Part shown: in pieces, positions 51,057-51,987 of the stretch | Layout of the letters: each line of letters starts with the position of its first letter | Numbering within the stretch: position 1 is the first letter of the stretch | Virus record (IMG/VR): IMGVR_UViG_3300010938_000951 | Location: 124,001 to 188,000 of that record | DNA: 64,000 nucleotides | Strand: one strand, 5' to 3' | Position numbers and translations under genes: made by a program | Notes under the pieces: model-generated | What the model was told of the DNA's origin: nothing | The model's input: the letters and a program-made list of their open reading frames with translations, nothing else | Databases searched by the model: none

Positions 51057-51653
51057 ATGAGCTATCTATAGAACCATCTAATCAGGCAAATGAAAAGCTG
51101 TCCACAGACAGACAGCCAATCCGTGTATGAACACGGCGTCTCTGTTAAAGAGCATATTTTTGAATTAATTTCATTCTTGAAAACCGGAAAGATTCCTGAA
51201 GGTTGGCGATTACCCGACTGGATGAGTGAGTATCGAGAGCAGTTGTTAGCCTCCTTACTTCCAGACGATATTATCAAAGCCTACGCAGTCTTCCACGATT
51301 GTGGCAAGCCCTATTGTATCACTATTGATGAACAGGGCAGAAGGCATTTTCCTGACCACCCTGAAATATCCCATAATGTTTGGCTGTATGTTAGCAATAA
51401 CAAAACGATAGCTAAGCTAATTCTTATGGATATGAAAATTCATACTATGAAGGCAGTAGATGTTGATGAATTCTGTCAGCATCGAGAAGCCACTACTCTC
51501 CTGCTTGCAGGATTAGCTGAAGTACATAGTAATGCAAAGATGTTTGGCGGCATTGATTCTGAATCCTTCAAAATCAAATGGAGCCAAATTAATAAACGCG
51601 GTAAAGCAATTTGCCGCAAATTATTTGGAGATAAACATGTGTCTATAGGTTAA
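51057..51653 (+). CDS. HD-domain phosphohydrolase with in-frame TAG at codon 5 (predicted readthrough; ATG 51090 is the alternative start)
   Basis: EHG, FHDCGKP, HFPDHPEIS; GATATATA leaderless motif 15 nt before ATG 51057. Confidence 0.75.
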
Positions 51654-51987
51654 AGAAGGCGATAAGCTTTATGTTATTACTCGTGCAGATTTGGAACCGG
51701 GTTATCAAGCAGTTCAGAGCATGCATGCTTTGAGACAATTCACTGCTGAACACCCTGAGATTGACAAAGTATGGTTTGAGCAATCAAACTATCTTGGGCT
51801 TCTTTCGGTGCAAAATGAACAAGAACTCATGCGGCTGCTAGAGCAAGCCAATGAGCAAGGAATTCATGCATCAGCTTTTAGAGAGCCCGATATTGATAAT
51901 CAGATGACAGCAATTGCGCTGTCACCCGGCCCTAAGTCTAAAAAGCTTTGTAGCCGATTACCACTAGCATTAAGAGGTAAACAATGA
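51637..51987 (+). CDS. Pth2-like peptidyl-tRNA hydrolase with in-frame TAG at codon 4 (predicted readthrough)
   Basis: GGAG SD, then ATG TGT CTA TAG GTT; KLYVITRADLEPGYQAVQSMHA, FREPDIDNQMTAIAL. Confidence 0.85.

Follow-up and report, generated by a model that had tools for sequence, protein, structure and literature searches.

Background

Pth2 (Pfam PF01981) is the archaeal/eukaryotic peptidyl-tRNA hydrolase, with solved structures such as 2zv3, 1wn2, 1q7s (Bit1), 3erj and 1xty. Large phages with many tRNAs are known to encode Pth2-fold proteins, which have been proposed to help rescue ribosomes (Iyer et al. 2021, PMC7824862). Among these, ORF295 of phage XacN1 is a canonical Pth2 with the GK and D motifs and a plain ATG start, without any TAG. 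Stop-codon recoding has been described in phages such as the crAss-like and Lak phages, in which a suppressor tRNA encoded in a standard-code region lets genes with in-frame stops be translated later in infection (Borges et al., bioRxiv 10.1101/2021.08.26.457843). [quoted passage not shown] Two other systems invite comparison. The prfB (RF2) gene appears to carry an early in-frame UGA whose fate reports the activity of the termination machinery, but it escapes by a +1 frameshift and senses its own product. The bar minigenes of phage lambda, associated with the pth(rap) phenotype, seem to consist of a Shine-Dalgarno (SD) sequence, ATG, one or two codons and a stop, and to release short peptidyl-tRNAs that Pth must recycle; they stand alone.

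Here we analyze a locus from a huge phage in which two neighboring genes, encoding a Pth2-like and an HD-like protein, each contain an in-frame TAG within the first five codons, just upstream of two tRNA genes with the anticodon CUA. In contrast to the recoded phages, the surrounding sequence is otherwise standard-coded, only two genes carry the stop, and the genes that appear to be gated are putative tRNA-maintenance genes. In contrast to prfB, there is no frameshift site, as the frame continues in phase across the stop, and escape would be by a dedicated suppressor tRNA. In contrast to the bar minigenes, the "minigene" is in phase and continuous with a Pth2-like reading frame. None of the papers found in the literature that we could search mentions start-proximal amber codons gating Pth2-like or HD-like genes, or a linkage of such genes to suppressor tRNAs.

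Genomic context

The stretch of DNA analyzed here (64,000 nt, hereafter "the window") corresponds to positions 347,950-411,949 of the 490,849-bp JGI contig Ga0137716_10000005, which belongs to a huge phage; the closest records in the phage collection are the huge phages of Al-Shayeb et al. The window is a translation and tRNA-repair island with 21 tRNAs, a tmRNA, and genes for aminoacyl-tRNA synthetases, RNA repair, IF3 and two ClpP proteins (Table 1). Further translation genes, encoding ribosomal protein S21, peptide deformylase and trigger factor, lie just beyond the window on the same contig. The tmRNA was identified with Rfam (RF00023, 114.9 bits) but missed by ARAGORN, and it lies at the same place in four related loci; the ORF that overlaps it may be spurious. 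Either of the two class I synthetases could charge a suppressor tRNA. A promoter and terminator scan was uninformative.

Table 1. Features of the locus and its surroundings (positions in the window).
Position	Strand	Feature	Details
839-922 and 1169-1243		tRNA-Leu(UAG) genes	two genes; read CTA
4818-5792 and 6895-8088	+	Class I W/Y-type aminoacyl-tRNA synthetase genes	one TrpRS-like, one TyrRS-like
19930-20247		Gene ending in TAG	backup TGA one codon later (20245-20253)
20250-31150 and 48197-48994	+	RNA-repair set	RlaP, two PNKP-like genes, two RNA ligases, Thg1-like tRNA-His guanylyltransferase
49300-49377	+	tRNA within the Thr array	irregular anticodon loop (ARAGORN gives "cg"; Rfam 43.9 bits)
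49947..50301	+	Phage tmRNA	1.3 kb upstream
50284-50550		ORF	overlaps the tmRNA
51057..51653	+	HD-like gene (phrog_14850)	ATG-AGC-TAT-CTA-TAG, then 193 codons, stop TAA 51651-53; ORF list start ATG 51090
51069..51071	+	In-frame TAG, HD-like gene	codon 5; CTATAG at 51066-51071
51598-51617	+	8-bp hairpin	directly upstream of the SD of the Pth2-like leader, inside the end of the HD-like gene
51627..51630	+	SD sequence GGAG	6 nt before ATG 51637
51637..51987	+	Pth2-like gene	ATG-TGT-CTA-TAG, then 112 codons, stop TGA 51985-87; ORF list start TTG 51691
51646..51648	+	In-frame TAG, Pth2-like gene	codon 4, followed by G; CTATAG at 51643-51648
51984..52537	+	Two small ORFs (79 and 105 aa)	ordinary ATG starts, no family match
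52544..52617	+	tRNA(CUA) 1	C1-G72, G73, CCA encoded; loop CUCUAAA; Rfam RF00005 47.1 bits
52628..52700	+	tRNA(CUA) 2	A73, no CCA encoded; loop CUCUAAA; Rfam 62.5 bits
54725-55264		IF3

The Pth2-like gene and its amber leader

The original prediction was that the Pth2-like protein cannot be made intact without reading through TAG 51646, as this stop follows the only SD-backed start and no alternative start precedes the conserved first strand. All its sequence claims are confirmed by our analysis, and the comparative data support the inference. Between the TAG and the KLYVITR strand the codons are GTT AAA GAA GGC GAT, with no ATG, GTG or TTG, and nothing SD-like precedes TTG 51691. The upstream HD-like gene ends in another frame, so that ATG 51637 sits in its last codons, as is usual for coupled genes. 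The original prediction did not include the analogous leader in the upstream gene, the conservation of the leader across deep clades of huge phages, the otherwise standard coding of the genome, or the lack of conservation of the presumably catalytic Lys of canonical Pth2.

The post-TAG product (112 aa) matches Pfam PTH2 above the curated threshold (32.9 bits against a cut-off of 23) from profile position 2, while the product starting at TTG 51691 matches only from position 13. A profile of 78 homologs matches solved archaeal Pth2 chains (2zv3, E = 3e-10) up to the C-terminus, and the match begins at residue 2 of those chains, which is their first strand. In the AlphaFold model (pLDDT 94.2, pTM 0.88) strand 1 comprises residues 6-12, and the TTG product would begin at residue 15, lacking this strand altogether. 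Foldseek comparison of the model identified Pth2 structures (2zv3, 1wn2, 1q7s, 3erj, 1xty) with TM 0.74-0.77. Residues K6, R12 and D14 of the N-terminal segment are invariant in 78 sequences, as are D81 and T87. However, the Lys of the canonical GKGK motif, which together with the Asp of RDAG is presumably catalytic, aligns with the nearly invariant Tyr19, and the Asp aligns with the invariant Glu79. Thus, we refer to the protein only as Pth2-like, and its hydrolase activity is uncertain.

Conservation of the leader

We examined the Pth2-like gene in 15 loci from IMG/VR, in 80 metagenome loci and in complete huge-phage genomes. ATG, one to three sense codons and TAG directly precede the Ile/Val codon that opens the conserved N-terminus in 15 of 15 IMG/VR loci, in about 47 of 75 informative metagenome loci, and in six complete huge-phage genomes, including LR756500, LR756501, LR745206, LR756504 and LR756502. 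This amounts to 55 distinct leaders, which lie on both sides of the deepest split of the family tree. The leader codons vary (TGT CTA, AGT CTA, CAT CTA, ACG, ACA, AAG, TCG, AAC AAT and others), but the stop is always TAG, never TAA or TGA, and the next base is always a purine. An SD-like motif is found at the corresponding distance from the ATG in 46 of 55 leaders, against a background of 10%. Interestingly, the codon before the TAG is CTA in 34 of 55 leaders, which yields the palindrome CTATAG, although CTA accounts for only 1.5% of codons in the genes of the window.

One sister clade of 28 sequences, mostly of higher G+C, has no stop and reads ATG GCC ACC ATC, i.e. Met-Ala-Thr-Ile-Lys-x-Gly-Asp-Lys-Leu-Tyr, at the same place. 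The N-terminus is therefore in the same position, and the TAG is replaced by an ordinary, variable residue (mostly Thr or Ser, but also Ala, Pro, Lys, Gln and others). Analysis of this clade for opal-gated leaders revealed no consistent pattern. A frameshift from the HD-like frame is unnecessary to explain the arrangement, as the leader is retained in three loci in which no HD-like gene lies upstream. We also considered whether cultured phages exemplify the same gate. XacN1 does not, and in Mycobacterium phage Myrna the Pth2-like gene gp84 is preceded by GTG TAG GTG, but the SD sequence fits the second GTG, so no gate is needed. Curiously, gene 86 of Myrna (1466-1537 of the extracted locus), annotated as tRNA-Ser and located 130 nt after gp84, has the anticodon CTA according to ARAGORN.

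The HD-like gene

The upstream gene shows no Pfam match, but belongs to phrog_14850. The TAG is followed by AAC CAT CTA ATC AGG CAA and only then by ATG 51090. All 27 distinct homologs have TAG directly before the conserved N-x-L-I-x-x-M segment, preceded by ATG and one to five codons, and LR745206 retains the leader even though its gene order is reversed. The structural model is confident (pLDDT 94.2), and the residues between the TAG and ATG 51090 are part of its first helix. The best structural neighbors, at modest scores, are a class II tRNA nucleotidyltransferase (3wfo-3wfr, TM 0.57-0.61 on the query), followed by HD phosphohydrolases. The PHROG profile contains a Pth2-like part and an HD-like part, which indicates that fusions of the two exist.

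A third candidate amber leader in the window (ATG 63607 GCA TTA TAG, after ClpP) was rejected, as the TAG is TCG in three relatives and lies in the 3' end of ClpP in another frame, while an ATG TAG at 40972 on the minus strand is within chance expectation. In LR756500 there are 12 candidates in addition to the Pth2-like gene, against about 6.6 expected by chance, which is not a clear excess, and their Pfam hits are unrelated (ATP-grasp, PD-(D/E)XK, dUTPase, PARP, DUF4326). In one of the loci compared (L020), the 333-aa gene upstream of the Pth2-like gene (4978-5997; DUF723 and zinc-ribbon hits) also starts with ATG, four codons and TAG.

Linked tRNAs

The two tRNA(CUA) genes, 560 nt downstream of the Pth2-like gene, were identified by ARAGORN and both pass the Rfam tRNA model. 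The second is weakly tRNA-Lys-like (75% identity to E. coli tRNA-Lys at E = 0.01), whereas the first had no match in E. coli genomes. A tRNA(CUA) is present within about 0.3-3.4 kb in 50 of 52 TAG-leader loci with enough flanking sequence. We discount the association of the TAG with tRNA(CUA) (Fisher test, p = 2e-7) as independent evidence, because on the tree the difference between TAG and sense codon needs only one change. Three TAG-leader genomes (LR745206, LR756504 and LR756502) show no tRNA(CUA) within 4 kb, although their full genomes were not scanned. Five loci of the sense-codon clade still have a tRNA(CUA) nearby, so the suppressor must have other uses. In this clade the tRNA downstream of the gene mostly carries a UCA-type anticodon in an irregular loop, and one genome (LR745208) has UUA. 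At several loci, 0.3-1.5 kb downstream of the Pth2-like gene, these tRNAs have an extra base 5' of the anticodon loop (GGA-a-CUUCAAA-UCC, or with CUCUAAG); the anticodon reads as UCA or CUA in the Infernal alignment, but ARAGORN calls it ambiguous. They may be opal suppressors or decoders with an eight-base loop. The family is therefore linked with suppressor-type tRNAs more generally.

Proposed mechanism and alternative explanations

The explanation we favor, with good though not complete confidence, is that ribosomes start at the SD-backed ATG and that the phage tRNA(CUA) competes with the host RF1 at codon 4 or 5. If RF1 reads the UAG, only a peptide of 3-4 residues would be made, whereas if one of the two tRNAs has been transcribed, processed, charged and reaches the A site first, the full-length protein would be made, including the essential first β-strand of the Pth2-like protein. 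Read-through has not been shown experimentally, and the decoding of this UAG by the tRNA, the enzyme activity and the purpose of the gate are all inferred. A stop placed this early makes failure cheap and the switch sharp, and the invariance of TAG at a position that tolerates many residues indicates selection for the stop itself, which is what a gate predicts and an ordinary sense codon does not. The amber codon would thus tie the synthesis of two proteins that putatively act on tRNA 3' ends to the presence and strength of UAG suppression in the infected cell. Judging from the context (the nearby tmRNA, the Pth2 fold and the resemblance of the HD-like protein to a tRNA 3'-end enzyme), the likely purpose is to supply tRNA recycling and ribosome-rescue capacity exactly when suppression makes ribosomes run past UAG stops.

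An alternative, which we consider unlikely, is that the phage uses a TAG-reassigned code throughout (code 15-like), and that this TAG is merely one of many sense codons. Some huge phages are reported to reassign UAG (Al-Shayeb 2020), the phage carries two tRNA(CUA) genes, TAG is rare as a terminator, and the Pth2-like gene of the 735-kb phage LR756501 (locus L002) has a second, internal TAG at about 4094-4096, aligned with the Glu of HPEID in the window. However, in the 102.9 kb of the contig that we sampled (about 390 kb of this genome was not examined), 94% is coding under the standard code, no gene is split by TAG, no other gene needs TAG read-through, and the stops are TAA 85, TGA 69 and TAG 6, i.e. 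6 of 160 genes end in TAG. The complete 462-kb genome of LR756500, which keeps the leader and one tRNA(CUA), is not recoded: it is 86% coding, with 544 genes, of which 28 end in TAG, and at most two possible TAG splits. Moreover, an ordinary sense codon would be expected to drift to synonyms, yet TAG is invariant in 55 leaders of the Pth2-like gene and in 27 of its neighbor.

It is similarly doubtful that ATG-TGT-CTA-TAG is a separate mini-ORF (a leader peptide or bar-like minigene) that really ends at the TAG, with the hydrolase made by re-initiation just after it or from TTG 51691. The leader does have the anatomy of a minigene, the codon after the TAG is ATG in two loci and ATT or ATC, which are weak near-cognate starts, in many, and termination-reinitiation may well be common in phage operons. 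On the other hand, the window and 16 other leaders have GTT, GTA or GTC after the TAG, which are not start codons, a mini-ORF could end in any stop, and the sense-codon clade shows that the Ile/Val is an internal residue. The TTG product has no SD and lacks strand 1 with the invariant K6, R12 and D14. Finally, a pseudogene or an assembly or sequencing error can be dismissed, as the TAG recurs in dozens of independent assemblies from different samples and the downstream ORF is intact, under purifying selection and has a confident predicted fold.

More speculatively, the amber leaders, the adjacent suppressor tRNAs and the two gated proteins could form a self-contained translational circuit in phages that otherwise use the standard code, in which the level of UAG read-through sets the dose of enzymes acting on tRNA 3' ends, possibly on the suppressor tRNA itself or on the products of suppression, so that read-through is both sensed and buffered. 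We regard this as a tentative possibility only; a feedback on the suppressor itself is possible but unsupported. If true, it would be a natural gene switch based on a suppressor tRNA, and would give a first class of targets for the "orphan" CUA suppressor tRNAs reported in non-recoded jumbo phages.

Implications

Phage suppressor tRNAs are usually explained by genome-wide recoding, and jumbo phages that carry a CUA suppressor but use the standard code are a stated puzzle: the authors of the XacN1 study could not find any target genes (PMC5852040). Our finding points to a kind of target that ordinary annotation hides, as a stop placed a few codons after the true start makes gene callers pick a later start or truncate the protein. 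It also warns that the N-termini of these families are wrong in databases called with the standard code. If our reading is right, the amber leader is a compact natural switch in which a tRNA controls specific genes, and which ties tRNA recycling and ribosome rescue (Pth2-like, HD-like, tmRNA) to suppression.
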